Of a DNA stretch of 64,000 bases, positions 13,576 through 47,050 are shown piece after piece. Source of the stretch: Chlorokybus atmophyticus (taxonomy: Eukaryota > Plantae > Mesostigma and Chlorokybus algae); NCBI GenBank assembly GCA_009103225.1, contig RHPI01003156.1:802159-866158 (forward strand), written 5' to 3'. Each line of letters begins with the position of its first letter. The stretch's first letter is position 1. The notes below the pieces were generated by a model. The model had not been told where the DNA came from, did no database searches, and worked only from the letters and a program-made list of their open reading frames with translations. Position numbers and translations under genes: made by a program.

Positions 13576-15002
13576 TAACATGATATGTAGTTTTTTATAA
13601 GTAACGAGCCTAATTTCAACAATGTAGCGGCTACATTGATATAAGCATTCATTGCGTCAGTTTAAGCATTATATATAACTTGCACGCCATGACCAATGTG
13701 TTGATTTATTCAACAATGCAAAGGTCGTACACAAGATCACCCAACGCAAGCCTCAATTTAAACTCGTACAAAGTCCCATAAAGACATGCGTATCACTTTT
13801 GTGGTACGACTTTGACTCCAAAATCTTGAAATGTAAGCGTCGTCCGCTTAATTGGCTTACTGGGCATTGCCCGTCATTACCTAAAAGAGCAATTGCCATA
13901 TCATCACAATACATTGATAGATTATGTCATTTTAGATAAGCATACATGTGCACGTAGTTTTGACGGGGGGNNNGGGGGGGGGGGGATGTTGGCAAGGTGC
14001 TGTGCATTAAATTGTTGTGGCCCACTGGGTAAGGTGCAACTTGCGCTGAGCCATTCATTTTCGCCCATTCGTCCAATTTTCCGGTCCGGTGCCACTTCAC
14101 ACTTCACCGATCCCGCCGCGCGCTCCCCCCCGTGCATTCGTCGTTTCGAGCCAAAAGCGGGCCAATGGCAGCTCGTCGAAGCCGTCGCGCGCCGGATACA
14201 AACTTTCAAAATTCAACGGACAGAGCGCTGGAGCGTGCCTCACCGGGTTCCTTCAACTAACCGGGTCGCCGGCACTGCATGGCGGTTAGATGCAACTCGT
14301 AAACGTCGTCTTCGACGTTTCGTTGAGCGAACGCGGTCAGGTTCGCTCGACATGCTCAGTCAGCGCGCGCGCTAAACTGTCAAGTGTCTCAGTTCGCGCT
14401 TAACCGCTGTTCATATATAATGCACTCAGCTGCCGGCATAGCATCTGTTATTATTAGCGTTTCTGTGCGGCGGTGGTGGTCTTCGTCGTCCCCGGCGTGT
14501 TTGTCGTTGTTGGCGGGGTTCTGGAGGTCGTTGCACACGGCGCGGCAGGTGCGGGTGGTTACGCTGCTGCCTTCTGCTGCTCTTTTCACTCACAGTAGCT
14601 CACAGCTCGCAAGCCTGTCGGCGTGTCCGCCATAGCCAACTCTTCTCGTAAGCTTTGCAGCTTTTGTCAGTTTGTGTGGTGGTCGTTGTTGGATAGCTTG
14701 TTGGCGGCGGTGGCGGCGGGCAGGTCGCTGCTTTGTACACAGCTTCATCACTGCATTGCGCAGCAAGTGGTACACGCTCTCAAGGGTGCTGTTCACTCGG
14801 GTGTTGACGCAGCTTGCCTCTCATGCCTGACTCATGCTTGCCGTCAGGGTTTCAGCTTGCCGTCCTGTCAGGGTGTGCGTCTCAGGCTTGTGTGTGACGT
14901 GCAGTCTTGTGCGGCGTTGTTTGCTAAATTCGTTAGCGTTGTGATGAAGCAGGCCTTGTGTGCTTGGTGTACTCACGCATAACTTGGTGTGGTTGAACAG
15001 TG

Positions 15003-16130
15003 ATGGCCCCCAAAGCGGAGAAGGCTGCAGCCGAGAAGGCTGAGAAGGCCGAGAAGGCCGACAAGCCTGAGAAGGCGGAGAAGGTAGAGAAGCCTGAGAA
15101 GGCCGAAAAGGCTGAGAAGGTGGACAAGCCTGAGAAGGCCCCTAAGGTGGCCAAGGCCTCCAAGGCGGAGAAGGCCCCCAAGGCGGAGAAGGCCGAGAAG
15201 CCTGCCAAGGCCAAGGCCCCTGTTGTCAAGCGGGACCATCCCAAGTATGATGAGATGGTGAAAGAAGCCATCCTTGCTCTCAAGGAGAAGACAGGTTCCT
15301 CTACACTTGCCATCGCCAAGTACCTCGAGAGGGTGAGTGTGTTGGCATGTTTGTACATGCAGCTGTGCAGTCGGTGTCCTGGTTTTCAGCTGGCTTACCT
15401 GCTGTCGCGCAGGAGTATGCAGGAAAGCTGCCTTCGAACTTCAGGAAGCTTCTCAACAACCAGCTCAAGAACATGATCAAGGTGGACAAGCTGAAGCAGG
15501 TAAAGAACTCTTACAAGCTGTCTGACAGCTTCAAGCCCAAGCCTGTCAGGAAGCCCTCCATGCGCAAGCCCAAGGTGGGTGCTAGCTTCAGCTGGCAGCT
15601 TTGGGACTGAGGTTCGCGTGTGGCCTTATGCAAGGCTGACCAGTGGTTAAATGTTAAGCAGGCTGCCAGCGAGAAGAAGCCAACGGTCAAGAAGGCAACA
15701 ACTCCTAAGAAGCCTGCTGCCAAGCCAGTGACCCCAAAGAAGGCAGTTGCTGCCAGGCCAGCAGCAACCAAGGCTGCTGCTCCAAAGCCAGCCAAGGCTT
15801 CCACACCCAAGAAGGCTGCAACGCCAACTAAATCCCCCAAGGTGCGTTAGTTGTGTGCATGACCCGATCTTGACTTGGTTATTCTGAACAGTTCGTTGCA
15901 TACTTTCGGACTTCATGTCACGCACTGACACTCTGTTGCAGGCTGCCAAGCCCAAGGCTTCACCTGCCAAGCCCAAGGCTAAGCCAAAGACCGCTGCGCC
16001 AAAGCCAAAGACAGCAACTGCAGCTCGCAAATCACCGGCCAAGAGGAAGGCTCCTGCTACAAAAGAGGCAAAGGCCCCTGCTGCTAAGAAAGCCAAGAAG
16101 GCATCAGCAGCGCCCGCCCCTGCGTCGTAG
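15003..16130 (+). CDS. H1: Linker histone H1, 4 coding exons (15003-15332, 15413-15574, 15662-15841, 15942-16130), 286 aa
   Basis: Globular domain HPKYDEMVKEAILALKEKTGSSTLAIAKYLE-REYAGKLPSNFRKLLNNQLKNMIKVDKLKQVKNSYKLS and a K/A/P-rich tail. Three canonical phase-0 GT-AG introns join all exons in frame. An acceptor AG just before the ATG suggests a 5' UTR intron. Confidence 0.97.
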
Positions 16131-16689: not shown

Positions 16690-17310
16690 GAGGACCAGCT
16701 TGCCCAAGGTCACAGTCGGCAATCACAACGCACTGCTATCTTTAGTGAGGCAACCAGGCCAGGTGGGAGGCAGGCCTCCCACTCGCTAAGACTGCTACTA
16801 GCAACTGACGCTATGCTGGAATCAACATACAATCGTTCAAATGCAGTGTACATGTCTGGGATACACATGCTATAGCGCACTACAGCATATGCCCTGCTGG
16901 GCTTCTTCTGTAATCAACGAGGACAACCCGTGTGCTGGCCGCATCAATGCGTGCTTCTTTGATACCGCAAATGTATTGCGCCTGTCATGCCCTTCTTTGT
17001 TGTTGAAGGGCATGACAGGCGCAATACATTTGCGGTATCAAAGAAGCACGCATTGATGCGGCCAGCACACGGGTTGTCCTCGTTGATTACAGAAGAAGCC
17101 CAGCAGGGCATATGCTGTAGTGCGCTATAGCATGTGTATCCCAGACATGTACACTGCATTTGAACGATTGTATGTTGATTCCAGCATAGCGTCAGTTGCT
17201 AGTAGCAGTCTTAGCGAGTGGGAGGCCTGCCTCCCACCTGGCCTGGTTGCCTCACTAAAGATAGCAGTGCGTTGTGATTGCCGACTGTGACCTTGGGCAA
17301 GCTGGTCCTC
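16690..17310. repeat. Perfect inverted repeat with 306-bp arms (16690-16995 and 17005-17310) and a 9-nt spacer
   Basis: The arms are exact reverse complements by inspection. The right arm ends exactly at the single N at 17311. Confidence 0.95.
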
Positions 17311-19504: not shown

Positions 19505-19726
19505 CGCCTACATCGCCAGCAACTTCATGCACTAACTTCTGCCTTTGGTTACTAATCAACCGTCAGGCTGTGAGTGCCTAACTAGTGGACTAACCGAGTT
19601 AATGGCCCCACACTGTAGATATCTGACCTACTTCCTATGTAGGTCCTGCAAAGCCTCTATATCAAGCCGCGCCCCACTGGAAGCGTTGGAGACTTACCCC
19701 CCGGGGCTAGGCGCCGGGGCTTACCT

Positions 19727-20004
19727 CCTAGCACACCAGTTAACGGGGTAGTATAAGGACCTTTTGCCTTAATTGCTCCCTGATGCATTGAAAGGCATTC
19801 AACTAAATGGCCATGATTTAATGATCTCTATTTCTTTTATGCATTTGACAGCCATTTCGCCTTTTCAGATCAGTAACAGGCATAGTATAAAAGGCAGTCT
19901 CGTTTCCATTTCATTGTGTGCTTCGAGCAGTTGCTCCCCTACTATGACCCCTAATACAAGTTGCACCCCTACTAATACAAGTCCTTTGTGACAAGTGTTT
20001 TGCT
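19727..20004 (+). repeat. About 275-bp dispersed repeat; second copy at 51016-51285
   Basis: Both copies start CCTAGCACACCAGTTAACGGGG, end ...GACAAGTGTT(T)TGCT and contain internal GTTGCNCCCCTACTAATACAA repeats. Confidence 0.95.
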
Positions 20005-20199
20005 GTCAATGTTAAAAGGTATCCGACTTTGTCAACGTTGTATTTTCTTTGCTATTTGTCAAGCATCGATTATGTCGATACCAGGCGCAACCAGGCAATT
20101 TAAAGGTGCTGCCCTACCGCGGTAGTCGGCACCCGCTTTGCGTGCGTTGTTTGTTGGCCCGCGTTTTGCGCGGCACCCTAAAGTCGGCGTAAGGTGCCG

Positions 20200-20700
20200 A
20201 TAGTGCGATAGGGATAGGGAAAAGAATAGGGATGATGCCTTTGGCGTTATTAGTATCCTACGCCGCCCAAGTGTGTGCGCGAACAGAAGGGATAGGGATC
20301 GGAATAGGCAAAGAGATAGGGACGGCAATAGGGATAAGGCAAAGAATCAGGATAATGCCTTTGGCACTATCAGCATCCTACGCCGCCCAACTGCGCGAAC
20401 AGTAAAGATAGGGATCCGAATAGGGAAAAAAATAGGGACGGCAATAGGGATAGGGATAGTGTCCGCTGGTAGGGATAGGGAAAAGAATAGGGATAATATC
20501 AGTGGCACTATCAGTATCCTACGCCGCCCAAGTGTGTCGCGCGAACAGTAAGGATAGGGATTGGAATACGGAAAGAGATAGAGACGGCAATAGGGATAGT
20601 GTTCGCGGAGTTGGCAAAGTTGGCAAAGTTGGCGAAGTTGACAATAGTCAATAATCGTACTGATAGGGTAGTTATAGGGATTTTAATAGGGGTAAGCATA
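20200..20700 (+). repeat. (GATAGG)n-rich array with three direct repeats of about 120-140 bp
   Basis: Core TAT(T/C)AG(T/C)ATCCTACGCCGCCCAA...GCGCGAACAG in units starting near 20230, 20350 and 20490. GTTGGC(A/G)AA occurs three times near 20610-20636. Confidence 0.9.
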
Positions 20701-21038
20701 GTGGTAATTGTGATTACGAATATTTCTCCGTCGCCGATTGGTTGTTTCTGATTATGATTGAACCAATAGGAGTTGAGCTTGTGTAATCTCTTGCAATGTA
20801 TATAGGCATGATATTGTCATATCCAATCAAAAACATGTTACTACACATACGTTTCTCAACATAACGCCCTTCAAGCTCAATTTTATTGAGGGTTTGGAGC
20901 TGGTGGCGGCGTAGCTGTTGGCGCGGGCGCGGACTTTGTGGCGGTGGGCATTTGTGGCTACTTGAGTGGCACAGGTGTGTTATTAGGAGTAGTGACATTT
21001 GGTTATTGGTCTTTGAGTGAACACATGATTGGTGAAAC

Positions 21039-24000
21039 ATGGACAATGTTGATGTTGGCAACTCTTCTTGGACTTACTCAACCCAACAACTTTCCACATG
21101 GATTAAAGAGCAACACATGTTCATTGGAGACATGCAATGTTGTGGTCTTTGTGGTGTGACATTATTTGGTCAATTTCAACGCAAAAAAATGAAGCTATAT
21201 GATCTTAATCATGAGATACCTCCTTACGCTATTGCGAACATGTTCATGGGTGACTTTACACGTACACCCACCTCAATGCGAGTTTGTCAAACATGTCACA
21301 ATAAATCGTCACGAAGACATCACACCGTCATGTACTCTACTGAATATATGCGCAAATTATTATCTGAACATCCCGTTGCTGTACAATATTTGGGACTTCT
21401 TAATACAAGCATTTGTTTGGACAGTCAAGGTCCACATAGCCATGGTGTTGGTATGTTGGGGACAAGTTCCTTAATTAAAGGACCACTAATTGTGTGGGAC
21501 AATTATTGCTTTAACATTGATCATGTTCCTGCATCACTTCATGAAGTACTTAGTGAATTGCTCATCACCAATGCACATGTCAGAAAGTCTTTAACCATGT
21601 TGGAATACCCTTCTATTTGTAGTGGAGTACCGGTTGCACATAGTACGATAGTCGAACACATTGTGCGAGAACAATGTCGTCGTGGTTTACTCAATGTAGT
21701 TAATAATCAAGAAAGATTACACGTTCTGACCACATTACTTCCTATTGAGACACCCACCAACAACACACATATACCCAACAATTTGATTGCTGGTGGTTAA
21801 ACTTGTCGTGCCACCAATGCGCATACAATTTTCATTCCTCTGAGGCTAGTACAAACTTAACATTAACAGTTGAAGATGCATTATTTCCAATGAATTTCCA
21901 CAAGGTGTTGGTAGTTTTGATGGTGTACACATACGTCATTTCACTGACTATATTCAAATGCGTTGTTCCATGGCTTTTTCCATGTTCACCTTGTATAAAC
22001 CTTACATACTATTAATGTATCACATCCGTCAAGCCCTGATGTTGGTTACTCAATGTCGCACCATATTATTAAACAAATCCATCATGAAATATCGCAAGGA
22101 TCACCCAAATTCATCAGATGAAGATACTATTCGTCATATCATCAAGTACAAAATCCCTAATTCTATTATAGGATCACCCAGTTGGCATCGCACACAATTG
22201 GGTGACTTGCTTACTTTGGTTGATCATTGGGGTATGCCTACGCTGTTTGTCACGTTAACTGCTGATGAAGTAAGCGAAACCAAATGGCCCGAAATTGTTG
22301 ACGTTTAAAACTTTCTCAAAAACATCGATCCAAACTTTACGTGGCGTGATGCACCCATTGAATGTGCCAGATTGTTTCATCATCGTTTTACAGTGTTTTT
22401 TCAAACATACATCATACGCAAGAAAATTTTAGGTAATGTAGAACACTACGTGATACGTTATGAAACTCAACATCGCGGGTCTTTACATGCTCATGTTATG
22501 GTTATCTCAAGATGATATTGAACGTGTTTCAAATGAGATTGTTGCATTCATACCGGGACAGTATGATGATAACACTGAAACCATAATTCCACCAACTGAC
22601 ACATACCAACGTGTGTTATTTGAGTATATAAGGAAAAACAATTACACATTTGTAGCCCCGTCGGAAGTTGTCGTGCTTTCAATAATGAATGTCGTTACAG
22701 TTTTCCATATGATACCTAATCAGAGCGTGTAGCCAAATTCAATGGCAATAGTAAACGTTATGATTATTACCGACCACGTTATCAAGATCGTAATGTTGTT
22801 CCATATCATACGTCGTTGTTACTTTTATGGGGTGCATATTGTAATGTACAGAAGGTGACAAATGATAATTGGTCTTTATATATACTTAAGTACACTATGA
22901 AGACTGAACCGCTCGGGGCACTGAATATTAATATTGACAATGCAAAATCATTGAGATTGAATGGTTTATCAGATACCGAATTACGATTTATTAGTGCCAT
23001 GTACTTGTCTAAACCATTATCTCCATGTGAAGCTGCTATGACTTGCTTGGAAAACCTATTATCCAAAAATCAAGCCGTGTGATTTACATCGACTCTCATA
23101 TGCCTTCGTCGCGTACCAAACTATTACAAGGTGCTCAACATGTTGTGATACATTCAATTGACATTCATTGTGCACGCCCACAGGAATTGGAGTTGGTGTC
23201 CTTTTGCGAGTACTTTCGTCAATATTATCGCACCAAAGGTGTCAACAACTCCTCACGGTACGTTCTGCCCAAAGACACGTTCATTGACTCACTGGGGTTT
23301 GTTGTGAATCAACTATAAGAATCACAGATTGTCAAATTCACAGATTGTCATCATGTGCATAACATGGAAGGATACTTTTTCAATCATCTATTAAGCAAAG
23401 TTCATTTTAGGAGTGAGCATGAGTTATTAAGTGATGACAATGAACAACGCTCATATTATGATGAATGCATTATTCGTGGGTATTTGGATGATAATACCTA
23501 CACTTTGGAACAACATATTATCACCTATTGTACTAAACACTTATTTACGGATTATCAAATACAACAATTACTTACGCAAATGGTTGGAAAGCAATCAGTT
23601 GATACTACCACCAACATTCCTAATATGAATGATTTGCACATTTACGAAATTGTAACACAACAACAGATTGAGGCATTAGGTTATGTTCATGAGTTTTAAG
23701 ATATTGCACATGGCATGTTAAGTCCCGAGCAACAATGTGTCTTTGATCACATTATTTCACAACACTCGGGTTTTCATGTTATATCGAGGACACCGGGATC
23801 CGGTAAAACGTATTTAACCAAAAAGATCACATATCATTTACGAAATCTAGGGTTAAAAGTTATGCTATGTGCATCTACAGGAGCTGCAGCTATTCGATTA
23901 AGTACAACTGCACGCACTGTTCATACTGCTTTTGGAATACCTTGTGCTGGCAGTTTCTTACCATATTTATCACCCATAGACACACGTTATGCTATAATGA

Positions 24001-24983
24001 ATGCTACTCAAGTTTTTATCATTGACGAATACTCCATGTTAATTGCTGAGATCATTAATTTATTATTTCTGCGCGTTCGGCAGCTATATGACCCAACAAC
24101 ATTTTTAGAAAAGATTCAAATCATTTTTGTTGGTGATCACAAACAACTACCATCGGTTTGCAAACATAGTCGTGGTGAGAACACACAACCTTGTGATAAG
24201 TGTCATAGTGGACATAGTCGTTATTGGAATGTTGCTCACAAACATACACTTAACACCTCTATTCGTCATGATTCTGATCAAGAATACTTGAGATTTCTTA
24301 ATGTCATTCGTAGTGAAGTTCCTTCACAAGGTCTAGTAGAAGATACATTGCATTCTTGTATTATGAATGGTTCATGGGAAAGCAATTTTACTGCAAATAC
24401 TATTACAATTTGCTCTCGTGTTCATGATGTTATACAGTACAACGACAAAGCCATCCGTAGTCTATTTCCTGAAGATGAAATACATATCATCATACTATAT
24501 AGCAATGGTACCAATGAAGTTGACTTGTCAGAGTGGATAAACGAACCCAAATTTCATATGTTAACATCAGTTGCAATACGTGCTAAAGCTATTTTACTTG
24601 CTAATTTAGACTTGAACGTTGGCGCCGCCAACGGTGCTGCAGGAGTTGTTACAAAATTACGCTTTTATTGTGAACATGTATCAGCTATTGAAGTATGTTT
24701 AAATGACACTCAAAAAAGCATTGTAGTCACACGATCCACTTATAAAACACATACACACAAAGGCAAGTCGTTCTATACATCGACGTTTCCATTACAACTA
24801 GCATATGCAATTACAGGACATAAAGTACAGGGTGCTACTCTTAATACACCAACAATTATCAATATGCGACATGCATTTGTGCCCGGGTTGTGGTATGTTG
24901 TGTTGTCAAGAATTACTAACCGATCCTTGTTGACATTGACGGACAAGCCTCAAGCCATTGACATGCAACCCATACCATGGTAA
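21039..24983 (+). pseudogene. Helitron RepHel (HUH Rep plus PIF1 helicase), intronless, with frameshifts and stops
   Basis: N-terminal CxxC motifs (CCGLCG, VCQTC), Rep motif 1 WGMPTLFVTLTADE, HUH RYETQHRGSLHAHVMLWL and YILKY. Helicase motifs TPGSGKT, IIDEYSM, GDHKQLP, FPLQLAYAITGHKVQG and YVVLSR. Confidence 0.95.
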
Positions 24984-25100
24984 CAGGTAAATTGCAATGC
25001 AATTGCATTCATTACATCATATTCAATACCAATCTCTACGTCTATAAATATGTACATATAGTTGTTTTGTTTATATGTTAACACTGACATGCTGATGCAG

Positions 25101-26238
25101 ATGGCTTCTTTTGACTCACGCGCAATCTTCAAGCGGGTTAAGACATAACATGAGGAAGCTCCAGATCAACGCAAGCGTGCACGCAAAGACGCTTGGGAGC
25201 TCTCCAATGCCCAAAAGCTTCTCCTCGACAACAATGGTGTACTCCCTGAAGACTACGACAGCATCCCGTTTACGCAGTCAGAAGCTGACATCTTCATCAA
25301 AGATGTCATTCGCGCTAGCGACAAGTTCAAGCAGGAACACGGAGTTGGCATCATCACAGGTGCTATCCATATGAACCACATGATGTACAATACAGTTACA
25401 ACATTTTTATTTATTGAATAATACATTGCGTGTTTGATGTGTTAGGTGGTTGCAAACATTTCATGAAGATTTTGGGGCATGACCTTCCCTCCAACACCAA
25501 ACGCACTATTGCCTATGTGGCTTGGAATCAAGTTTTTGCAGAACTTAACCCTAAAAACAATAAAATTGGACGAAAACCGATTCGCGCCCAACAGATGGTG
25601 GAGTTGGTAGTCTGCTACAAGGCGTGCTCGTTTGACGAGGCCAAAGTACTTTCCAATGGCGAAGCTGCTGACTACCTCGATGCCATCCATGAGCAAGACC
25701 CCAAATACAAAAAGACCAACAGCACTACATCTGATGAGGTATGTACTATGCTTCATGTGTTGTAGCATTTGAAGCACAAGTTGAGCTCTGAAAAACACAT
25801 CTTGCACGCAGGTCGCGAATGAGGTGCGTGACTTACTCAACAATAGTTGCATGGATGCCACACTCGCACTACCCGCAACACCTTTACTCAAAGCCACTCG
25901 CAGCAACCGCGCTGTCGCAAAGCCTTGAAGGGTAGTCATGGTTTTGTGTACCTACTACGGCATATACATGAAGGCAAAGTTTATATAGGACAAGCAACCT
26001 AGTACGAAGATTTCATGAGCACCGACGTCACCCACCTCGCAAGTTGCAGCAAGACTTGGACGTGACTCAACCGTTTCAAAACCAGGTTGAGATGCGGTCT
26101 TTGGGGTGGGCTACGACCAAGGACGAGCTGGATGCTTTAAAAGCCAAGTTCATTCGCGAGTATAATTCAAGCGCGCCAAACGGCTACAATGTGGATCAAG
26201 GCAATCCCGCAAAATTCAAGGCATTTTGGGCACGTTAG
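25101..26238 (+). pseudogene. ORF X (unknown domain) followed by a GIY-YIG endonuclease domain; exons 25101-25359, 25446-25738, 25812-26238
   Basis: GFVYLLRHIHEGKVYIGQA / VRRFHEHRRHPP / LKAKFIREYNSSAPNGYN. The upstream exons align with those of element 2. Contains a stop and frameshifts. Confidence 0.8.
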
Positions 26239-27853
26239 CGTAGAAATCCTCATTTTGGTAGAAATAAGCGTTAAACAATACAATGGTAGTAATAACGTAA
26301 TACCTTTGGTGTCTGAATATGATGTTCAAAATGCATGTAACAATACATCCCACATCCTCATCCCTATCGCTATTCCTAACTCCATCCCTACCCCTATCAT
26401 TTACCCATGCCTCCACTACCACTCACCATTCTCAAACCTCTATATTCCCATCCTTAACCCTATCCCCACCTGTCCCTATCCCTATCTCTATCCCCATCCC
26501 TTGCCCATCCTTATCCCTATCCCTGTCCCTATCCCTACGCTTCTCCTAATCACCACCACATGCTATTCCCAACCCGGTCAACATCACACTATCACCATCC
26601 CTATCCCTATTACAATAACTACTCTCACCACTATCTCTATCCCTACGATTCACCCTATCACCACCACATGCATTAACCCTTTCACCACGGCATGCACTTG
26701 GCAACCACATGCAGCGTCACACACTTAAAATCAAAGTGACACAGAATAACATAAAAAAACTGTAGTTACGACCATATCTACAAATGTCAATATCATTGCA
26801 CCAACTTTGCAACCAAATGTAGCAGCACGCGTCGGATCTGTGCAAGAAAAACGTCAGTAATTTGTACAATATATCACACCTTATGGGACACATCATACTT
26901 ACCTCCAGCTTATCTTCCTTGCCGCGATGATCTCGAGGCAATGCTCGGAGCTCTTTCGTCATCTTGAAAATTTCACCCACACTTTCCGGTGCAACAAAAT
27001 CCATGGCCAACTTCACGCAAGACTGCGACATCAATGCACGCGAATTAAATACAAAATACAAAATACGGGTTGATTGAAAATGACTGCAGCTTTACCTTCA
27101 AATTGCGGACCTGGTGTGGACATCCAGCAGGTATAAATATAGCATCTCCGACATATTGGATAATACGCCAAGGTGTAACACCTACCACATCAATAATCAC
27201 GACAGATTAGATACCAATCAATTCAACCCTCATTAAACATACAACAACAAAACCATAGCAACACATTTTATAGCCAACAGCTTACCGTATTGCTCTTGCA
27301 ATTCCAATAAATGTTCAACACGCAAATAAAATGTCTGATCTTGAATTGGGTCAGTCACCTACAACCACAACTCAAATGAGTATCACACAAATGAATTAGC
27401 TCATAAACGACATAATGATTTGTAATTATCACCTCCTGCAAAGGGGCATTGTGAAGATAACGAAATCGGTGTTTATTCTCCACCAGATATGCACGCAGCT
27501 TGTTGACATCTTAACGATGAAAGATATCCCATACAGCTCCGCCAGTAGGTGCCTAACACAAATCATCAACTGACGACAATTGCAAGTGGGGCAAGTGGGG
27601 CAATTGCAAGTAGACATACACCTATCAATATATGTCAGCAAATATACATACCGTATTTTGCATACGAGCTTTTCCCGATAACTTTTTCGCTGCACACGAA
27701 CTTCATCACCACATGGATCCTGAGTGAACATCAACACATTGACCTATAGATGATGCCCAAGTTATCAAACCATATAACACTACCATAATCAACAATTCAA
27801 TCACTCACCGCATCAGACATGTCGCAGTGTAAATGCGTAACAGAATTCCCCAC

Positions 27854-29880
27854 CTCACGTTCCTCTTCGCATCCATAACCAATGTAGCATTTCGGACCCA
27901 AATCCGCAGGAATGTGCTCCTGCAAATGAATATGGTGACAACATATTCTCATCTCACATACTTTCCGAAAATATGTAACTCGCTATATTTGAAACACCCA
28001 ATCCCTCTCTTATCTCTCACGCTAACCCTATGCATGCCTAACGCTATCCCTACCCTCTCCCTCTCCCTCTCCGTGATCCTCTCCCTCCCCCTTCCCAGCT
28101 TCTATCCCTCTCCCTATTCCTCCCCCTATCTCTATCCCTGCCCTATCTTGCCCTATCCTTATCCATCTCCTTGTCCCTCTCCCTCCCCATCTCCCTCTCC
28201 CTCTCCCTCTTTTATACCTCTCCATATCGCTATCCTACTCCTCTCTCTCTCCCTCTCCCTCCCTCTCCTTCATATCCCTGACCCTATCCCTCTCCCTCTC
28301 CCTGTTGCTGTCTCTCTCCCTCTCCCTTTCCCTCTTCGTCTCCCTCTCACTCTTCTATCCCTCTCCATGTTCGTCTGCCTATCCCTCTCCCTCTCCCTCT
28401 CCCTCTCCCTCTTCTAACCCCCCCCTAGCCCTATGCCTCTCCCTATCTCTATCCCTACCCTCTCCCTCTCCCTCTCCCTCACCCGCTCTCCCCTCCTTCT
28501 CCCTATCCTTATCCGTCTCCCTACCCCTATCCCTCTACCTCTCTCTCTCCCTCACGTTCCTCTTCGCATCCATAACCAATGTAGCATTTCGGACCCAAAT
28601 CCGCAAGCATGTGCTCCTGCAAATGAATATGGTGACAACATATTGTCATCTCACATACTTTCCGAAAATATGTAACTCGCTATATCTGAAACACCCAATC
28701 CCTCTCTTATCTCTCACGCTAACCCTATGCATGCCTAACGCTATCCCTACCCTCTCCCTCTCCCTCTCCGAGATCCTCTCCCTCCCCCTGTTCAGCTTCT
28801 ATCCCTCTCCCTATTCCTCCCCCTATCTCTATCCCTGCCCTATCTTGCCCTATCCTTATCCATCTCCTTGTCCCTCTCCCTCCCCATCTCCCTCTCCCTC
28901 TCCCTCTTCTATACCTCTCCATATCGCTATCCTACTCCTCTCTCTCTCTCCCTCTCCCTCCCTCTCCTTCCTATCCCTGACCCTATCCCCCTCCCTCTCC
29001 CTGTTGCTGTCTCTCTCCCTCTCCCTTTCCCTCTTCGTCTCCCTCTCACTCTTCTATCCCTCTCCATGTTCGTCTGCCTATCCCTCTCCCTCTCCCTCTC
29101 CCTCTCCCTCTTCTAACCCCCCCCTAGCCCTATGCCTCTCCCTATCTCTATCCCTACCCTCTCCCTCTCCCTCTCCCTCACCCGCTCTCCCCTCCTTCTC
29201 CCTATCCTTATCCGTCTCCCTACCCCTATCCCTCTACCTCTCTCTCTCCCTCACGTTCCTCTTCGCATCCATAACCAATGTAGCATTTCGGACCCAAATC
29301 CGCAAGCATGTGCTCCTGCAAATGAATATGGTGACAACATATTGTCATCTCACATACTTTCCGAAAATATGTAACTCGCTATATCTGAAACACCCAATCC
29401 CTCTCTTATCTCTCACGCTAACCCTATGCATGCCTAACGCTATCCCTACCCTCTCCCTCTCCCTCTCCGAGATCCTCTCCCTCCCCCTGTTCAGCTTCTA
29501 TCCCTCTCCCTATTCCTCCCCCTATCTCTATCCCTGCCCTATCCTTATCCATCTCCTTGTCCCTCTCCCTCCCCATCTCCCTCTCCCTCTCCCTCTTCTA
29601 TACCTCTCCATATCGCTATCCTACTCCTCTCTCTCTCTCCCTCTCCCTCCCTCTCCTTCCTATCCCTGACCCTATCCCCCTCCCTCTCCCTGTTGCTGTC
29701 TCTCTCCCTCTCCCTTTCCCTCTTCGTCTCCCTCTCACTCTTCTATCCCTCTCCCTGTTCGTCTCCCTATCCCTCTCCCTCTCCCTCTCCCTCTCCCTCT
29801 TCTAACCCCCCCCTAGCCCTATGCCTCTCCCTATCTCTATCCCTACCCTCTCCCTCTCCCTCTCCCGCTCCCTCCCTGCT
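27854..29880. repeat. Three tandem copies of a unit of about 700 bp (CCCTAT/CCCTCT-rich intron plus part of a JmjC exon)
   Basis: CTCACGTTCCTCTTCGCATCC recurs at 27854, 28551 and 29250. Confidence 0.95.
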
Positions 29881-31479
29881 TCTCCCTATCCCTATCCTTA
29901 TCCGTCTCCCTACCCTTGTTCCTGTCCCTATCCCTATCTATCTCCCTCTCCATGTCCCTCCTTGTATCCCTCACCCTGTGCCTCTCCCTACTTTATCCCT
30001 ACCGTACCCCTCTCCCTCTTGCATCCCTCTCCCTACCCCTATCCCTCTCCCTATATCTATCCCTACCTTACCCCACCCTACCCCGAAAAAAGCAAAAACG
30101 TGGTAATGTGCAATAACATTATGCAACCACATTAATCCACATTAATCAACACATACCTCAGGATCATAACATAATTGGCTAAATTCACCGTTTTGATGCG
30201 TGTACTCTTTTTAAGGCAACATGTCTATGAAATCTGCATAAAGCTCAGGTAGCACATCTTGTAAAGAAGCCTAACAATACAAAACAACATTATTATCAAT
30301 ACACAAATACAGCATTTTTTTGGCCACAGATGCCAACGAACCTTTGTAGGCCAATTCTTTATTTTGAAGAATTTGCGTGTGTGGTCGGGAGTATCATACC
30401 CATGTGCGAAGCCTCGGAAAAACTCGGCAGTACTCAACTTGACCTGAACAACAACAATGCAATGAGGACAAACAAACCCAATAATATAAACACAATTAAT
30501 AAACCTACCTCACACCATCCATCACAATCCAACACAACAACAGAGGGGGAGATGCTGCCGATATCACGCCGTAAACTTCGAACGCTCAAATCAACACTCA
30601 TTTCACCAGTTTGTCTGATACGCTCCACAACGACGGGATGTCCACGTCGCAAATGCCATTGGAAATGGCTCAACCTAGCTTTATCTACAAACAACATAAT
30701 TAAATGAGTTTAACACAATGCACATACACACACCCTTAAACTGGTCATGATCTTACCTTTGTTGAATTTTACCAGTGGGATACGAAACACGTCATAGTCC
30801 TGTAACAACAACACAATTATGAAACGGACAAATCACAACCAACTGAACTAAACAATAGATAGGACAAAACAACCATAGCGTTGACATTTACCTTACTAGT
30901 CTCGTACACAGGTAGATAGATAGCTTGCACCGCCATATGCGCCCAATCAGAATGCACCACAACACCTCTATTAACATGTACATTATCAACACGATTTAAT
31001 GCAAACACGAAGCATCACACAAGCAACACCTGTATGATGGTCTGATCGATTTCCTCTCACGCATTTCCATGCATAGCTTGCAACCCTGTGCAACAAACCA
31101 GGTTAAATAAAACAATATATAGCAACATCGTCAAACAATCACCAGAAAAAGGGAACAAATATACCTCATCAACCACAGCTTCAGAAGGGCCCTTCGACAG
31201 TTGCGAGACTTTTAAACGTAAAGCAGCGCGGTCTATATGAAAGACTTGCTGCACACGAATAGCACCTACATGGCTAACATCGTTGCACAATGCTATACAA
31301 GATGAACTACATCGTTCAAGAAAGCACTGTGCACAAATATCAAAACCTTTGCACAATACACATGTGCAATGTATGTCTTCAATACTCCCGCGACATCGAT
31401 TACTGCAAACGCATTTAGTCACATGTGCAAGGTAGAGGCAACTCAACAAAAAAGCTTTCAAATAGCAAAAAGTAGAGAA

Positions 31480-32020
31480 CAGTGGGATAAGGACAGGGAA
31501 AGGGATAAGAATATGATACGAACAGGGATAGGGATAGGAAGAGGGAGACCGAGAAAAAGGAATAGAAAAGTAGGAAAAGGGATACAAATATGGATAGGCA
31601 GAGGGATAGGATAACGGATAGGGATAGGGAGTAGGGGATATACATAAGGAAAAGAAATAAGGATAGTGATAGGTAGAGGATAGGAACAGGGATAGGAATA
31701 GGAACAGGGGGAGAGAGAGAGAAAAGTAGATAGAGTCAAGGATAGGAAAGGATACAAATAAGGATAGGGATAGGGAATAGGGGTTGGAGAATAAGAGTGC
31801 GTGGAAGGGAAAGGGATAAGGAAAATCACGAGGATAGGGAGAGGGATAAATATAAAAAGACAAATAGCAGAGGGGAAATAGGGATAGGGGAATAAGAGGG
31901 ATAGGGGTAGGAATATGATCAGAATAGGAGATAGGCGATAGAAGATAGGAGGATAGGTGGGGGTTGTATTAAGTATAGATGCAAAGGAAAGGAATAAGAT
32001 AGGGGCAAGTATAGAGCATA
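31480..32020 (+). repeat. (GATAGG)n-rich purine tract within a JmjC intron
   Basis: Same motif as 20200-20700; the reverse complement form occurs at 26350-26660 and 28000-30080. Confidence 0.9.
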
Positions 32021-34161
32021 GGTAGAGTGCGAGGCTTACCAAAGTAACCGTGCACAAACCACAGTAGGTAGATCCATTAGTTGGTGTTGTTCTAGAAACA
32101 CAAAGTCAATAACAACCACAAAAGCAAAAAAACACAAACCGAGTACAACAACAAACTTACTTGTTAAAGTCAAGGTGTCCAATTGGAGCTCAATGATAGT
32201 GATAACCACCTTGGCAACATGTTGCAGTATATAGCTCATAGTGCCAGATTTGATACTCATAGGAATTTCTCTTGCCTGTAAATTCCATCACATATGACTA
32301 TACCACACACCACAAGGCAAAGCATACACCACAAAATTACCGCCGCACCTTACGTTGCCTAGATGACAACACATTTTCAAGATCTATCTCTTCAAGAGCA
32401 CGCTTGCCGGTCTTCTTCCCTGGCTTGCCTTTGTTGCCTCGAGTTTTCCCTTGTTTTGTACCCTTTGCAACCTCCTCACATGCACCTGTTCAACCGATAC
32501 ATATCAAACACATAACACACAATTCAAGCACATACAACCCACAACATACCGCCATCACTGTGCAGCACAACCGGAGAAGCCACCGTACAACCAACGCCAT
32601 CAGGTGCATCTGGACATACAAAAAATATAACAAAAATTAGCACTAGCTGAGATCCGAGATGAATGCAACACTGTATGTACAACACAACATGAAGCAAACA
32701 GTAACACATGGACACCGCACCGCGCGGCACCGCGGCATCCTCTAGCTGTTGCAGACGCTGCGACAATCCTGCAATCAACTCATGGGCATGATCCAGTCGC
32801 TGCCGCAAGTGCACATTCTCCTCATCACAAATAGCAAGCTGCTCCTGCATCATCACACTAGACACCTCCCACATCTCCGCCATATCATCCACTTGCAACC
32901 GCAACCTACTGGCTTCCCTATCGCGAGTTGCAAGTTCCTCATGCAAGACAACCTGCAATAACAACAAATGAGGAACAACAATCACAAACAGACACACATG
33001 TCCACGAGCAATTACTTGTCTGCACACCACCAACACGTACACGTCGTGACACCAGCTGATCTTGCAGAGCAGATGAGTTGAACACTGCTGCCTCTTCAAC
33101 AACATATGGAACGGCAGGACTGCCTTCCGCCGCAGCAGCGGGAACCGGCAAGGCAATCAGTGGTTGCTTGCCCTACAACAACAAACCACACTAACTTTGC
33201 AACCATATTGCAAAACCAAACAAACAGTAACACATGAATACATACCTTGAATGCCTTGAACGCTTGTTTCGCTCGGGCCCAGGTACCTGCACACTGCATA
33301 ATACAACATGGAACAACAACAAGCCATACACATAATGTTACAGTTACAATAGCAATAACACATACAAAATCGGGCTGCTGCATAAAGGCACGCTCCAATG
33401 GACGAACATGACGAGGACGCTGTCCCACCTGATATGGTAAAAACCATAAGTACTCATAATGTCAACAAGATAGTACAATAGAGATAATACAGCACAAACT
33501 TACTTGAATGGTAAGAAGAATAGCCTTGGCTAAGGTTTTCATATCAGCACCACTCTCCTCACCACCACCATGGAACCGCATACGGAAATAACGACAGGTG
33601 GCGGTTTGCAGATGCTGACGAACTTTGAAAAGATCACCCACTTTCACATTGGACCCACAGTAACGACATCCCCATTCACACAAACTAGCCATGAAATAAA
33701 AACTCCTGCACATCGTTAACATCGTTCACACACAGTTGCCGTACAATACCATAAAGCATGATAAAATTACGTAAACACCATTCTACCTTCACACGTAAAA
33801 AACTGTAGTTAATCTACTCTCGAATGCTCCAGTGTCGTCACCAGCGGCACCTGACCTCACCCCACACCACCACCACATCATACCTATCATACAAACGACC
33901 CTGTCACATCCACAACACGAACACATTAAGCAACCGCCGCCGCCGATGTCAGTCACACAGTCGTAACACATGGCAGCAAACGTACTTTCATCAGCTGTTC
34001 AGCTGCCGTATGCGCCTGCGGCTGTCTACGGCGACTGCGCTCACCCCACGCCGCACATCAACCCGTCACGTCCACACGCCAGTACAGCGGACGACCGCCG
34101 CCGCCGCCGCCGCCAACGACAACCAGACAGATGTACCGCCTGGCCGGCGCCGTAAAACGCT

Positions 34162-34170
34162 AAACCCTAA
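34162..34170 (+). promoter_or_regulatory. Telobox AAACCCTAA upstream of the JmjC gene
   Basis: Exact match to the plant telobox, next to a GCC-rich putative 5' UTR. Confidence 0.45.
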
Positions 34171-34807
34171 TACACGTTCCAAATCCTATTAACACACAAA
34201 GGAAAACCGACATTTGGAAATGCCGATAGCTAACAACCGCCCATTATAACCAAACATATTTCACATCCACCAACGCAACCATATAGGAATACTAATACGA
34301 AAGTTTTGATTCGAGCCCTGTCAGCCTCCATCCTAGTTTGCTTGTACATTTGCATGCGCGTGTGAGTGACACTGTGCATGTTGTTGTGCTCATTTTGCAT
34401 ATTTGTATGCATTGTGAGCTGCTGCTTAACCTGGGGATGTAGGTTAAACGGTCCAGATCTTTTGATTTCTGATCCAACGGGCCCATTGTTTACACCGCCC
34501 AGCCTATCAGAAGGCTGGAGGCGGTACAGCGCGAGTTTCGCGCGTTTGTCGGACCTCGACCGGACGTTGCCGGTCGCAACCGGCGTCTTTTTATCATTTA
34601 ATCATTTAATCATTTGTGCTTTATAAACGCTTATTTGGGTAAGTGTCTGAGGGATTCTTACCCTCTATTCTCTTAGCTCTTATTCTAACTACCATACCAT
34701 AAAGGGTGGACGGCCTCTGTGGACGGCCCCTCGCTTCCTAGTGTCAGAGCAAGTCTCGCCTATGCCAATCGGGCGTGAAAACATTTAAACAAAATCATGT
34801 GTGGGGG

Positions 34808-34972
34808 NNNNNNNNNNNNNNNNNNNNNNNNNNNNNNNNNNNNNNNNNNNNNNNNNNNNNNNNNNNNNNNNNNNNNNNNNNNNNNNNNNNNNNNNNNNNN
34901 NNNNNNNNNNNNNNNNNNNNNNNNNNNNNNNNNNNNNNNNNNNNNNNNNNNNNNNNNNNNNNNNNNNNNNNN
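34808..34972. other. Assembly gap (165 N) between two versions of the LTR-end/PBS sequence
   Basis: N run with near-duplicate flanks. Confidence 1.
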
Positions 34973-36637
34973 CTCGCTTCCTGGTATCAGAGCAAGTCTC
35001 GCCTACGCCAATCGGGCGTGAAAACATTTAAATAAAATCATGGGGGGGGTGGGGGGTGGGGGGGGGGTTACAATTGCAATAAACCTTGGGCCTATCAGAT
35101 TAGTACAATGAGTACTAACAGCGGGGATTCCGTCAATGACGATATCAACCCTTAAGAAATTGAGGAGGTTACCGACAATATGTATAGTAGCACGATATAT
35201 ACATACTGTCGGTATCCTCCTCTTGGTAGTATCTGCAATAGTATTGCAGATACTATGACCAGCATTTCTGCCCCAAGAGCAGCACCTATTGTGCCTAATT
35301 GCCACAAAAGAAATTTCCAATGCCAACTAAAATATTTTTTTCGAGGAAATCCCATGAAGATGTTGGTCGGTGGATTTCACACTCAGCGCGGTTGTATCAG
35401 TGGTCTGAGGATGAGAAGTTTAATTTGACAACCACATGCTTGCGCAATGGCGCACAAGATTGGTTCGACCAGTCTGATTGAAATAGTTGAAAATAATTTA
35501 AGGAGCGCTACACGTGCGCTTTGACACTGTTGATTCCAATGTGTGGACGACGAAACTGAACAGTCGTAAACAGGAAGTTGGTGAATCAGTGTAAATATAC
35601 ACGGATGGCATTCAAGTCCTCATAGACAAACTCGGGAGGAAAACCTTCCCCGCAACGTGGCGCAAGGTACGCTTTATTCAAGGACTTCTCCCTCACCTAC
35701 ATGAAAAAGGTGACTGCACGCATACCTGAAACCTTAGGAAATGCATTACGGGATGCAAGATATTTTGAGTCCGCGGCCTTGGTGCAACAGCAAACAAAGG
35801 CTAAAGACGAAGACGAAGGTCAATGCTGTACAAGCACGTGATCCGGCATACAATGCACTTGAGACAAAGGTTGACCTTACTCAAAAGCTTCAGCATTAGC
35901 GCGAGCAAACTCTCACACCCAACTGGTGAAGCAAACCAAGTACTCCAAGCACAAAAGTGGTAACAAACCAGAGTCAAGCTACAGTGGTATTAAGAAGAAC
36001 TTCAACAGAAGCAACATGCACTGCACATGTTGTAACAAATCGGGTCACACTGCAAAAGGATGCTTCATTAATGAGAGGGATGAATTGCGCAAGTGCACAA
36101 ATCCTCACAGCGACAAGTGCAGCTAGTGAGTTTGCAAGACTTGGTCACTGAGGACACTGCTTTTGCAATCACAAGTCTTACCTCAGGTGGGAAGACCTTT
36201 ATACCTCCCAAAGCTGAGGTGAGAGCAAGTGTGTCACAAGTTGACATCACAGATTTACCGAATGTGCAAGTACCCAAAGGTGCTAAGTACAATGTGATCG
36301 AACAGTTGGACAATATGACAGCTAAAATCTTGCACTTGCTCAAGGTTAGCCCCAAGTATCATTAACACTTGCTCGATTACTTGCATAAGTTCAACCAAGT
36401 TGGCCAATGAAATTAAAGGTATCAAAACTACAGAGTTTCTCAGCGCGATTGCCACCATGGCTGTGCGCTATAAAAGTACAATAGCAATGGTTCACGTCAG
36501 TGGCCATGAGTTGGAAGCTGTCGTAGACTCTGGTGCGGCTTGCACCGTAATGGGCATTGCGACTGCTCGCAAGCTTGGGCTTGAGAAAACAATGCAAGCC
36601 ACAATGTGCACTATGCGCATAGCCAACGGACAGGAAT

Positions 36638-37078
36638 TGTAACAGCACCACCGTCGCTGGTGATGCCCCTTCAATCCTCTACCCACACCCACACCGCCTA
36701 TGACAAGCCTTTCAGCGGCGTGGCCGCCGCTGAGCAGAGAACTAAAATATCCCTTACATCAGTTTGATGTGACCTTTTATATCAAGAGTATATCAAATGT
36801 ATACCTCTCAATAATTCACTCACAATTGAAAGATACCTATCGTAAGGTACCTGACGAGATAGTGATCACATTTTATCAAATGTGACACTAAATACGCTTG
36901 AATAAGCGGTTCTACACCCATTGGGACTTATTGAAGCTATCATAAAGCATCGTAGCCTTTAATAAGCGAGGAACCGTAGAAAAGAGGTAAAAATAAGCAT
37001 ATATTTAGATACTTATTTATACAAAATGTGTTATTTAGGTAGCAATAATACCCCTATTACTATTGCTCTCTCGTTACA
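36638..37078. mobile_element. Solo LTR (441 bp) nested in the Gypsy protease
   Basis: Termini TGTAAC...GTTACA with TSD GGAAT/TGAAT (one mismatch). Removing it restores IANGQE-CSFLG. Confidence 0.8.
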
Positions 37079-40000
37079 TGAATGTTCCTTCCTCGGCACA
37101 TTACCACAGCATGACATCACAATTGGCAATGTGACACGAGCAGTGGATATAAATAAGTCCATCATTGGACTACAATTTATCGATTGGTACAAGCTGGCTG
37201 CACAAAACCGGTGCGAAGTTGGATTACTCAACCCAACAGCTGACATTTACATGCAAGCCACACGACAAGAGTGTTGAAGTAGACTTACACTTCACATATG
37301 AGCCTGCATTGACTTGTTTGGTGGCTTCAACTTCGCACGAACAACGCGCACATGCCGATTGTACTATGTTATTGCAAATACACAATTCAAAATGTCTGAT
37401 ACATTGACGCCTAATGAACAACAACAGTTGATGGTATTGTTGTGGAATGCAACATAGACAACTTTGCAAAAAAGTGGGAACCTCTCACTCACACACCTTT
37501 GGTCAAGCATGCCATTGACACAGGTGATGCAAAGCCCATCAAACAGAGACCTTACCGTTTGTCGTTCAACGAACCAAGTTGGTGGAACGCAAACAGGTCA
37601 ACGAAGAAGCTGAGAAATTGCTCAATGCAAACATCATTCGCCCATCCAGTAGTCCGCGGGCCCACGAGTACTACTAGTAGTGATGGTGCCAAAGCCGAAT
37701 GGAAGTATACGCTTTTGTATTAGCTATTGCAAGCTGAACAATGTGTCAAAGAAAGACGTGTACCCACATCCGCGCTGCGATGATGTGTTGAAAAAAGTGG
37801 GCAATGCCAAGTTCTTCTCAATCTTGGATGCTTTGCAAGGATATCGGCAAGTACTTGTTAAAGAATGAAAGTGACAAGAAAAGACGGCATTTGCCACACA
37901 TGATGGCTTGTACGAGTCGAATTATGCCATTCGGGTTAACCAATGCCACGGCAACATTTCAACGCTTGACAAGTAAGGTGCTCAAGGACTACATTGGTGA
38001 CTTTATTATTGTGTACTTGACTGATATACTCATCTTCTTAAACACCTATGAAGAGCATCTTCAACACTTGGAAAAAGTGTTTGCTATATTGCAAAAGGCA
38101 GTTATTAAGTTGAATGCACAAAAGTGCTCATTTGCAATGACGGAAGTCAAGCACTTAGGCCACCATGTGTCTGTGGCAGGCACACTACCTTAACTTAAAA
38201 GGGTTGAAGCTGTGCGCAATTGGTCCGCGCTTGAGAGTGTGACATAAGTCAGGTCTTTCCTCGGGTTGGCCTCATATTACAAACGGTTCATTCCCAACTT
38301 TGCAGATTGCGCAACCATTGCACGACCTTATTAAAAAGGCGTTGGAGTATAAGTGGGGCCCGGAATAACAGCAAGCGTTTGATGCGCTTAAGCTAAGCCT
38401 CACCACAGCGCCTGTGTTGTCAGACCTGACTAAAGCAAGCCATTTTTCATGATGACTGATGCCTTTGACTTTGCACTTGATGCGGTATTGGCACAGTACA
38501 CAGATGATTGCAAAAAACCAGTCATTGCATATGCGAGATCGCTCATCTCTGCAGAGACGAACTACAGTGTCTCTGAAAATGAGTGCTTAGCCATTGTTTG
38601 GGGTGTCTTATTTTGGGAAGTGTACTTGCATGGCAACAAGTTCACTGTACTCACAAACTTTCACTTTCCAAAGTGGTTGATGACTACAAAGGATTTTACA
38701 GGTCGGCTTGCCCGATGGGCTTAAAACATTGCAGCAATGTGACTTTGACATTCAGTACCATTCTGATGAAAAAATTGGCAATGTGGATGCACAAAGCCGC
38801 ATACCTCTCTGAGGCCCAGAAATGCCACCACTGATGCCAATGACAACTTGTTACTACCATTGAATGGTACCTACTGTAGGAGCAGTTAAAGCTCAGATAA
38901 GCTTCGGTCTTGGAGGAAAGGAGCTCACTGATAGCTCAGATTGATACTTTCATCTGAGTGATGAGGTTGAGGAATTTTTCGCAATCCCAATTGAGATAGC
39001 TTCAGAAGAAGCTCTTACACCAAAGGGAGAGTCATCTCCACCTCGCAAGAGATTGCGGTGCTCGTATTGCTACATACGCAATCATCACGCGACGGCAAAT
39101 TGCCCACACAAGTCCACCATCAGGTTTAAAGATGTGCTTGATAATGCACGAGTGATTGCTTAGCTCATAAGGGGGAAGGATGCATTAACTGGAAAGCCCC
39201 AAGGTATAAGAAGAAAGGTGATCAGCAGAGCCAAACGCTATTTTGTAAATGAACAAGGTTTGTGGCTGCAGTCAACCTCACCGTATGGGAAGGACAGCCT
39301 GTCTGGAATTGATCCCTCCACATTTGAGATTGATCCCTCCACATGAGACCCGTGCTAAGTTTATTAGGATGCGCATGATAACTCAAGCCATCGTTCCGCC
39401 ACAGTGGTGGGCGAATGGTTGAGACAGCGATTCTTTTATTACAAATTGAGGGAGGAGGTCAAAAAGTATGTAAAAACATGCATAGAATGCCAAGCTAATG
39501 CTCTGAAAGTGCGTGAACCTGCACCACTCAAGCCAATCAAAGTGAGTGCATTAGCATTTGAGAGAGTAATCACTAACCTCATAGGGCCGAATGAGCCACC
39601 AACCCTCCGTGGCAACACATACGTGATTACTGCCATTCATCACCTGACCAAGTGGGCTGAGGCTCGAGCACTGCCAAACAAAAAGGCAAGAAGTGTCTAT
39701 CCCTTCATCATGGAGGACATTATAGGACATTATAGGCCGACATGGCCTTCCCAGGATCTTGCATAGTGATGAGGGAAAGGAGTTTATGCAACAGCAGTTG
39801 CATGACAAGTTGGACACAATGCAGATTGCACACTATAAATCTGCTTCTTACCACCCACAAACCAACGGGTTGATTGAGAGATTCAATCAAACCATCAAGT
39901 CTGCAATTGCCAAGTACGCACAGACGTACACAGACAGGTGGGATGATATGTTACCTTTTACAAGGTTGGGATCTCGCGCGATGCGCCAACGCACGACATT

Positions 40001-44626: not shown

Positions 44627-44695
44627 TAACCGGTAAGTGCAATCAGTGTTGCGCAATGGTGTGGCATATGTTGCATTATTTTGGCGATATGATAC

Positions 44696-46878: not shown

Positions 46879-47050
46879 AACTGGCTATTGTTTGTGTAGG
46901 TCACCATGTGTGTTGGACAGTTTGTGCGACACCATGCTTTGGTGTCGATATGATACAGGTGGGTGCATATTAGTGGTGTAACTGTGTTGGTGTAACTTCA
47001 TAGATGTACGTATGCTGTGGTGTTTGGTGTAAGTGTATTATCTCAGCGAC

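Follow-up and report, generated by a model that had tools for sequence, protein, structure and literature searches.

A Helitron-like element of Chlorokybus atmophyticus with a decayed KDM3-type JmjC gene as its probable cargo

A three-gene insertion in a retrotransposon repeat

We analysed a 64,000-nucleotide stretch of Chlorokybus atmophyticus DNA (contig RHPI01003156.1, positions 802,159 to 866,158), here called the window, with all coordinates counted from its first letter. The window contains a Helitron-like element of about 14.3 kb (element 1), which interrupts the 5' long terminal repeat (LTR) of a Ty3/Gypsy retrotransposon and holds three genes, namely a gene for a Rep-helicase protein (RepHel), a second gene with a GIY-YIG nuclease domain and a third, on the opposite strand, for a JmjC protein of the KDM3 type. 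This copy is dead, all three genes being pseudogenes. A divergent Helitron-like copy (element 2) lies further downstream in the same retrotransposon. An earlier, sequence-only reading had proposed that the JmjC gene is a component of the element and not a neighbouring host gene, and this is borne out by the paralogous empty site, the 3' terminus common to both elements and the element-specific motif arrays described below; on this basis, the JmjC gene is very probably cargo of the Helitron-like element. The element, its flanks and its partner copy are laid out as follows (strand in brackets where assigned; a slash within a junction sequence marks the element boundary).

19724–19997 (+): left flank, the first ~275 bp of the Ty3/Gypsy 5' LTR (repeat R), 89% identical to 51013–51282
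19998–34336 (+): element 1, Helitron-like copy of ~14.3 kb, delimited by the split LTR, uninterrupted contigs and the terminus common with element 2
20208–20599: ATAGGG-rich tandem arrays upstream of RepHel, from Tandem Repeats Finder (TRF) and hexamer counts
21039–24983 (+): RepHel pseudogene with zinc-finger-like N-terminus, Rep and PIF1 helicase, from Pfam and collinear tblastx
25101–26238 (+): second gene, N-terminal part without assigned family plus GIY-YIG nuclease domain (25847–26235), in two frames
26446–26537: CCCTAT array between gene 2 and the JmjC 3' end (TRF, hexamer counts)
31515–31850: ATAGGG array within the third gene, as intron or spacer (TRF, hexamer counts)
34308–34336 (+): 3' terminus of element 1 (last letters CATCCTAG, next letters TTT), from the alignment with 50566–50592
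34337–40330 (+): right flank, the remaining LTR and then Gypsy gag (CCHC), protease, reverse transcriptase (RT), RNase H and integrase, 87–88% identical to 51279–52822 and assigned by open reading frame (ORF) content
40331–50592 (+): element 2, divergent Helitron-like copy, boundaries predicted from terminal motifs
51013–52825 (+): paralogous empty site, uninterrupted R (LTR and gag start)

Element 1 is classed as Helitron-like by its predicted Rep and helicase domains. The Helitron_like_N match (PF14214; 21958–22308) had an E-value of 9.4e-8 and 32.9 bits against a Pfam cut-off of 28.9, and the PIF1 helicase match (PF05970; 23715–24983) had an E-value of 3.2e-19. At the protein level (tblastx), this RepHel is collinear with that of element 2 (40.6–44.6 kb) and with a metagenomic Helitron, L001, and the Rep motif reads VIR-YETQHRGSLHAH in element 1 and AIR-YETQHRGTLHAH in element 2. 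The gene carries at least four stops (22306, ~22717, ~23319 and ~23700) and two frameshifts (~22495 and ~23050), all within stretches conserved with element 2. In the second gene, the GIY-YIG domain is split over two frames, with PF01541 positions 2–20 in one and 20–78 in the other as weak Pfam halves; the gene also gave a SegE_GIY-YIG match (E 0.0018) and shares 44% tblastx identity with 46636–46872 of element 2.

Related RepHel genes were present on two metagenome contigs of the Joint Genome Institute (JGI), L001 (1491–4731) and L002, with 41% identity in the helicase, and no GIY-YIG, RING or JmjC gene was detectable in the 8.6–9.9 kb of contig examined. In protein databases, the relatives of the helicase ORF comprised four metagenomic sequences at 35–41% identity and two weak matches at 23–24%.

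The boundaries of the insertion follow from repeat R. A self-comparison of the window showed that R is contiguous at 51013–52825 and split at element 1 (20000/34336), with its first ~277 bp at 19724–20000 (89% identity) and its right portion resuming at 34336 and extending to 36156 at 87–88% identity. R continues into a gag CCHC knuckle, protease, RT, RNase H and integrase (35.3–40.26 kb) and is therefore the Ty3/Gypsy 5' LTR plus leader; the idea that R had arisen from element 1 by internal deletion, as a non-autonomous derivative, was rejected for the same continuation into gag, protease, RT and integrase. We also used two public DNA runs that hold the locus (X1 and X2), which are labelled as different organisms and gave contigs of 100–300 bp at ~3x word depth. 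Their contigs confirmed the locus sequence and the empty LTR site: uninterrupted LTR contigs in both runs pass straight through the insertion site, and loose contig ends before 34338 resemble 19970–19998. The segment from ~19998 to 34336 is a single insertion of ~14.3 kb within the LTR, and because this LTR is split here and contiguous elsewhere, the RepHel and GIY-YIG genes and the JmjC gene in its entirety came as inserted DNA. The case that the sequence-only reading had set against its own proposal, in which the JmjC gene is a host gene merely neighbouring a Helitron, is contradicted by the empty site, given that the gene lies inside a 14.3-kb segment interrupting an LTR that is intact elsewhere, and we consider it extremely improbable.

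The left boundary differs from the one first proposed: position 19727 corresponds to the start of the flanking LTR, and the element itself starts at ~19998–20001. Four nucleotides at the junction are ambiguous, as GTTT fits on either side of element 1, which we read as 5'-TTTTG...CATCCTAG-3' (the 3' terminal string for family mining being ...CCTGTCAGCCTCCATCCTAG). The last 29 nt, ending CATCCTAG/TT, align with 50566–50592 (z 4.6; 1/500 shuffles), a site just behind the reverse-strand third gene of element 2, and the motif CATC[N]CTAGTT occurs at only two places in the 64 kb, at the 3' ends of elements 1 and 2. The predicted ends of element 2 are G/TTTTG at 40331 and CATCACTAG/TT at 50592, and both elements thus have G/TTTTG at their 5' ends.

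Some further strings near the element ends are worth recording. At 36 nt from the 3' end of element 1, still within it, AAGTTTTGA (34300–34314) resembles the 5' junctions of both elements, AAG(TG)/TTTTG (19995–20003 and 40328–40336); CTGTCA is found in the same orientation close to each end of element 1. These junction-like strings may represent a recognition sequence.

The hexamers ATAGGG/CCCTAT, which the sequence-only reading had noticed in the JmjC introns and upstream of Rep, are concentrated in element 1 (74 of the 81 in the window), in arrays that precede Rep, lie between genes 2 and 3, and occur in two of the third gene's introns. The further claim that the JmjC gene is AT-richer than the host genes holds in part: the GC content at third codon positions (GC3) was 0.43 in the JmjC exons and 0.27–0.32 in RepHel, compared with 0.55–0.77 in two host-like ORFs. 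As a reference for host composition, an ORF at 15000–15476 (+) that resembles linker histone H1 and contains a lysine/alanine-rich repeat has a GC3 of 0.77.

On one side of the JmjC gene lies gene 2, the GIY-YIG gene, whose end (~26238) it faces tail-to-tail, as had been described for the RepHel/GIY-YIG unit as a whole; on its other side is the 3' terminus typical of the family. One could imagine a composite, with the JmjC gene derived from another, unrecognised mobile element beside or within the Helitron, or with the Helitron inserted in that element. Such an origin would fit the fact that the empty site fixes only the outer junctions and that the 5' terminus of element 1 has no significant similarity to element 2 beyond GTTTTG. 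However, past the JmjC gene the segment ends in the 3' terminus of the Helitron family itself, and the gene is flanked on either side by the same motif arrays that it also contains. Self-comparison, inverted-pair and Pfam searches of 26.2–34.3 kb revealed no LTR or terminal inverted repeat pair and no other transposon domain, which makes a nested second element unlikely, and there are no target duplications around the JmjC gene. Taken together, we regard a composite insertion as very improbable.

The KDM3-type JmjC gene and its decay

The JmjC part of the third gene was modelled with ten exons on the minus strand (30682–26793), in which all introns are GT-AG and the phases fit without a frameshift. 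Upstream of this model lie a separate zinc-finger exon and a putative 5' part. The features of the gene are the following.

33692–32340 (−): putative 5' part of the third gene, open frames; within it a Cys-rich N-terminus (33692–33465), a coiled-coil-like region (~32980–32680) and a basic stretch (32489–32340)
31330–31060 (−): KDM3-type zinc-finger exon, from local alignment to KDM3 proteins
30682–30509, 30443–30342, 30270–30157, 27919–27809 and 27743–27666 (−): JmjC exons, the fourth of which (27919–27809) is the HxD exon
27552–27433, 27358–27286, 27181–27096, 27022–26903 and 26837–26793 (−): JmjC exons, continued, including the second-His exon (27181–27096)
30213–30211 (−): in-frame TAA at the F of the plant LPFKEYT motif
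27513–27511 (−): in-frame TAA within WDIFHR*DV
27853–29975: tandem triplication of a ~698-bp unit in the large JmjC intron (self-blast 96% and 92.5%; TRF)

The model product comprises 340 aa, and its TGA stop codon (26795–26793) coincides with the gene end at 26793 given earlier. Over residues 4–340 it aligns with KDM3 proteins of plants, at ~38% identity and a best E-value of 1.9e-84, and the named full-length matches are JMJ25 or JMJ26-like. The second-His exon matches Pfam JmjC above the cut-off (E 8.4e-7) as well as KDM3B structure sequences (E 7.7e-9), and the HxD exon also matches KDM3B; in these alignments, THLHCD and PAGCPHQV fall on the iron-ligand positions of KDM3B (HxD and the second His). 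The assignment as a KDM3-type gene with its iron ligands, likewise made by the sequence-only reading, is thus confirmed. The zinc-finger exon, about 600 bp upstream of the model, has the KDM3-type pattern CxxC-x7-H-x-C-x2-C-x4-C-x2-C and aligns to the region N-terminal of JmjC in 10 of 13 KDM3 proteins at z 4–9, a short match of moderate strength. No Pfam family was found in the putative 5' part (32340–33692), which consists of open frames only, and no WRC- or RING-type domain was detected in the N-terminus of the third gene.

KDM3 proteins demethylate mono- and dimethylated lysine 9 of histone H3 (H3K9me1/2), and Arabidopsis IBM1 opposes CHG methylation. As judged from the domain and its ligands, the product of an intact ancestor would have been an Fe(II)/2-oxoglutarate-dependent lysine demethylase of the KDM3 type with H3K9me1/2 as its substrate. 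Seven of the nine intron positions coincide, within two residues, with alignment breaks in intron-containing metagenome KDM3 loci, and the gene therefore derives from genomic KDM3 DNA and not from mRNA. Among 80 environmental KDM3 loci (650 kb), none had a RepHel or GIY-YIG gene nearby, and the pairing of KDM3 with RepHel is therefore not a general property of KDM3 genes.

Two in-frame TAA codons lie in conserved exons of the JmjC gene, so that the nonsense decay that had been noted for both this gene and RepHel was found again. In addition, the 698-bp triplication, which is rich in CCCTCT/CCCTAT, has produced two further copies of the HxD exon's acceptor and first 66 nt; genuine decay or an error of assembly could account for it. 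With two stops in 1.0 kb of exons for JmjC and about six lesions in 3.9 kb for RepHel, the lesion densities are alike (about two per kb of coding sequence). Small as these numbers are, they are suggestive of both genes having been intact at insertion and having decayed together since. Within the JmjC-bearing region, contigs of X1 and X2 show the same ~4–5% differences from the window at 31940–32115, yet are identical in the neighbouring stretches, and this may reflect a second, slightly diverged copy of the region or an allele.

As the main alternative, the gene could be a passenger, a host KDM3 gene that was picked up as genomic DNA, was never useful and is decaying in one or a few copies. 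The two nonsense codons and the disruptive intron triplication would be expected of such a gene, the cellular intron positions indicate uptake at the DNA level, and X1 and X2 contain no diverged JmjC paralogue contigs, whereas RepHel has them. On the other hand, the KDM3 catalytic module is largely there, with its zinc finger and the 340-aa JmjC region, nine of nine modelled introns are GT-AG without any frameshift, the iron ligands are in place, and the lesion density is no higher than that of RepHel. Moreover, the ~38% identity to plant KDM3 proteins and the element-specific arrays in the introns suggest a long residence in the element, and the same slot holds another gene in the divergent element 2. 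Capture of a useless passenger is rather unlikely in our view.

Relation to element 2 and to described elements

Element 2 has the same layout as element 1, with a RepHel gene, a GIY-YIG gene and then, in the JmjC slot, a reverse-strand gene for a coiled-coil/RING protein. The sequence-only reading had described the third gene of element 2 as occupying the same slot and sharing a homologous N-terminus with the JmjC gene. Slot and orientation do correspond, but the homology did not hold up: BLASTP gave no match, the best Smith-Waterman alignment of the two N-termini (score 42, z 4) runs partly through a probable intron, and comparisons of the coiled coils and of the zinc finger with the RING domain were at chance level. 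N-terminal homology of the third genes was therefore rejected as evidence.

The RING gene of element 2 is flanked by an inverted repeat of ~230 bp (47060–47294/49799–50022; 86–89% complementary) with CATAT-type motifs. Both Helitron-like copies lie inside one Ty3/Gypsy element (19724–52825), element 1 in the 5' LTR and element 2 starting ~70 bp past the end of the integrase ORF (40262). A second LTR and gag start follow at 51013–52825, by which a tandem LTR-internal-LTR-internal arrangement of the Gypsy element is suggested. The LTR copies are only 87–89% alike.

Element 1 is not a canonical Helitron (HLE1): it starts with 5' TTTTG and not TC and is flanked by G and T instead of lying at an A^T site, while the 3' CTAG is present. 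Insertion at T^T with T strings at the boundaries characterises the Helentron/Helitron2 group (HLE2; PMC4067079, PMC11417382), and the junctions of element 1, GTTT/T...CTAG/TTT, allow T^T; both elements start with TTTT. A further signature of HLE2 lies in Rep motif 2, which is preceded by R and followed by RGS rather than RGL (PMC4067079). By-eye comparison with this pattern showed R before the motif and RGS/T after it in elements 1 and 2. An AP endonuclease fused to the RepHel C-terminus, by which Helentrons are strictly defined, was not found in element 1, which has a separate GIY-YIG gene instead. Together, the T-rich junction and the Rep motif suggest that element 1 belongs on the Helentron/Helitron2 side.

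The closest described architecture is that of proto-Helentron-Pi of Phytophthora infestans (Thomas et al. 2014, PMC4067079). Like element 1, it is ~14 kb long, has 5' TT and 3' CTAG ends, was delimited by a paralogous empty site and contains several accessory ORFs. Its cargo, a Clr4-like SET gene, stands for a writer of H3K9 methylation, whereas the cargo of element 1 is of the eraser type. It also differs from element 1 in having no GIY-YIG gene, in inserting between A and T (the junction of element 1 being G/T or T/T) and in being represented by 25 copies, while one JmjC-bearing copy of the family of element 1 was read. Within the green lineage, HelenSM92, an HLE2 of Sphagnum magellanicum (HELIANO, PMC11417382), likewise combines RepHel with GIY-YIG and T-T sites; it has short terminal inverted repeats, of which none were found in element 1, and no JmjC or chromatin gene was reported for it.

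Other comparisons concern the cargo. According to PMC5735166 and PMC10398659, VANC of the Arabidopsis VANDAL elements, a group of Mutator-like elements (MULEs), is transposon-encoded, counteracts the silencing of its own family and acts via short family-specific motifs in non-coding regions, and the ATAGGG arrays of element 1, like the arrays of different sequence in element 2, have a corresponding layout. VANC is, however, not an enzyme of known fold, is unrelated to JmjC and belongs to another transposon superfamily, and binding of the arrays in element 1 would be pure conjecture. Fungal DNA transposons (KDZ and others) with TET/JBP genes (PMC12730594) carry an enzyme of the same 2-oxoglutarate/Fe(II) dioxygenase class that erases a silencing mark, but its substrate is 5-methylcytosine, and dioxygenase family, transposon superfamily and kingdom all differ. 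With the cellular plant KDM3 proteins (Arabidopsis IBM1/JMJ25 and JMJ26), the gene of element 1 shares the zinc finger and JmjC domain, the iron ligands and most intron positions; it is unlike them in its ~38% identity over JmjC, its different N-terminus, its location inside a transposon and its being a pseudogene. Helitron-like elements with accessory chromatin genes are thus already known. In the literature searched, with subscription journals outside its reach, neither a Helitron nor a transposon of another kind was described as carrying a JmjC demethylase gene.

Possible use of the cargo and further features of the window

Plant and algal transposons are silenced by a loop of H3K9me2 and CHG methylation. 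To our knowledge, few transposon-encoded countermeasures exist, VANC being the main example, and its biochemistry is poorly understood. Given this background, the explanation that we favour, and consider moderately probable as a whole, is a three-gene Helitron-like element with a KDM3 cargo that served anti-silencing. The KDM3 gene was taken up as genomic DNA, the three-gene transposon, probably of the Helentron/Helitron2 side, inserted into the Ty3/Gypsy 5' LTR, and all three genes of element 1 are now pseudogenes. In this scenario, the likeliest benefit of the intact product to the element would have been to strip H3K9me2, which feeds CHG methylation, from copies of the element, such that RepHel would stay transcribed; the demethylase may have been targeted to the element by the ATAGGG/CCCTAT arrays. 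That the KDM3 cargo has retained an anti-silencing function, which is argued by analogy with known systems, is a tentative proposition. More doubtful still is the wider idea of a Helitron-like lineage that keeps a KDM3 demethylase under selection and recruits it via ATAGGG arrays, with a sister lineage using a RING protein.

Several observations weigh against the anti-silencing explanation or the assignment on which it builds. Helitrons often carry captured genes without function, and the sole JmjC-bearing copy read is a pseudogene with two TAA codons, in which the 698-bp triplication disrupts one intron/exon border. The read contigs contain diverged RepHel paralogues (~85–87%), while the JmjC pieces are only of the 95–100% identical kind (at low coverage), and JmjC-bearing copies may thus be few. 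Protein and contig collections yielded no close relative of RepHel or JmjC. With regard to the ends of the element, the GTTT overlap could reflect either a T-rich end without any duplication or a 4-bp target-site duplication, and folds of the element ends gave no 3' hairpin (z +1.4). There was also no terminal or subterminal inverted repeat and no 3' palindrome in these folds or among the 25 longest of 66 inverted pairs, all of which were motif arrays; this search used a single copy, and weak repeats could escape it.

A different use of the cargo, in transposition or targeting, would be to open H3K9-methylated chromatin at donor or target sites, for example LTR retrotransposons, or to act non-catalytically. 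Both Helitron-like copies indeed lie inside a Gypsy element, a typical heterochromatic target, and the same slot of the divergent element 2 holds a RING gene. A possible parallel for non-catalytic action is Arabidopsis JMJ24, which acts through its RING domain, and non-enzymatic functions are also reported for fission-yeast Epe1 in PMC7192584. Nevertheless, the conserved iron ligands argue for a catalytically active ancestor, a pair of insertions into a single retrotransposon does not make a statistic, and no observation separates this idea from anti-silencing; we consider it improbable.

If the anti-silencing explanation is true, a transposon-borne enzyme that erases H3K9me2 would constitute a direct and testable counter-defence, an enzymatic eraser of heterochromatin, and a chromatin enzyme with its complete, multi-exon gene could reside as cargo in Helitron-like elements. 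On a conservative reading, the locus shows with unusual clarity an almost complete gene inside a Helitron-like element whose ends are exactly defined. In either case, the terminal motifs (5' TTTTG and 3' CATCCTAG) permit genome-wide mining of the family.

Elsewhere in the window, ORFs at 242–1827 (−) resemble by eye a MULE/FAR1-type transposase (e.g. ...CYFHLMQDWERHL...), as a candidate only. Two palindromic stretches each match their own reverse complement, at 16690–17310 (621 bp, 98.6%) and 60232–60430 (199 bp, 87%). Finally, a direct repeat of 553 bp with 99.6% identity occurs at 8889–9441 and 13975–14527, with ~4.5 kb between the copies and the first copy directly after a run of Ns (~7.9–8.9 kb), and could represent either the two LTRs of a young element or a duplication introduced by the assembly.

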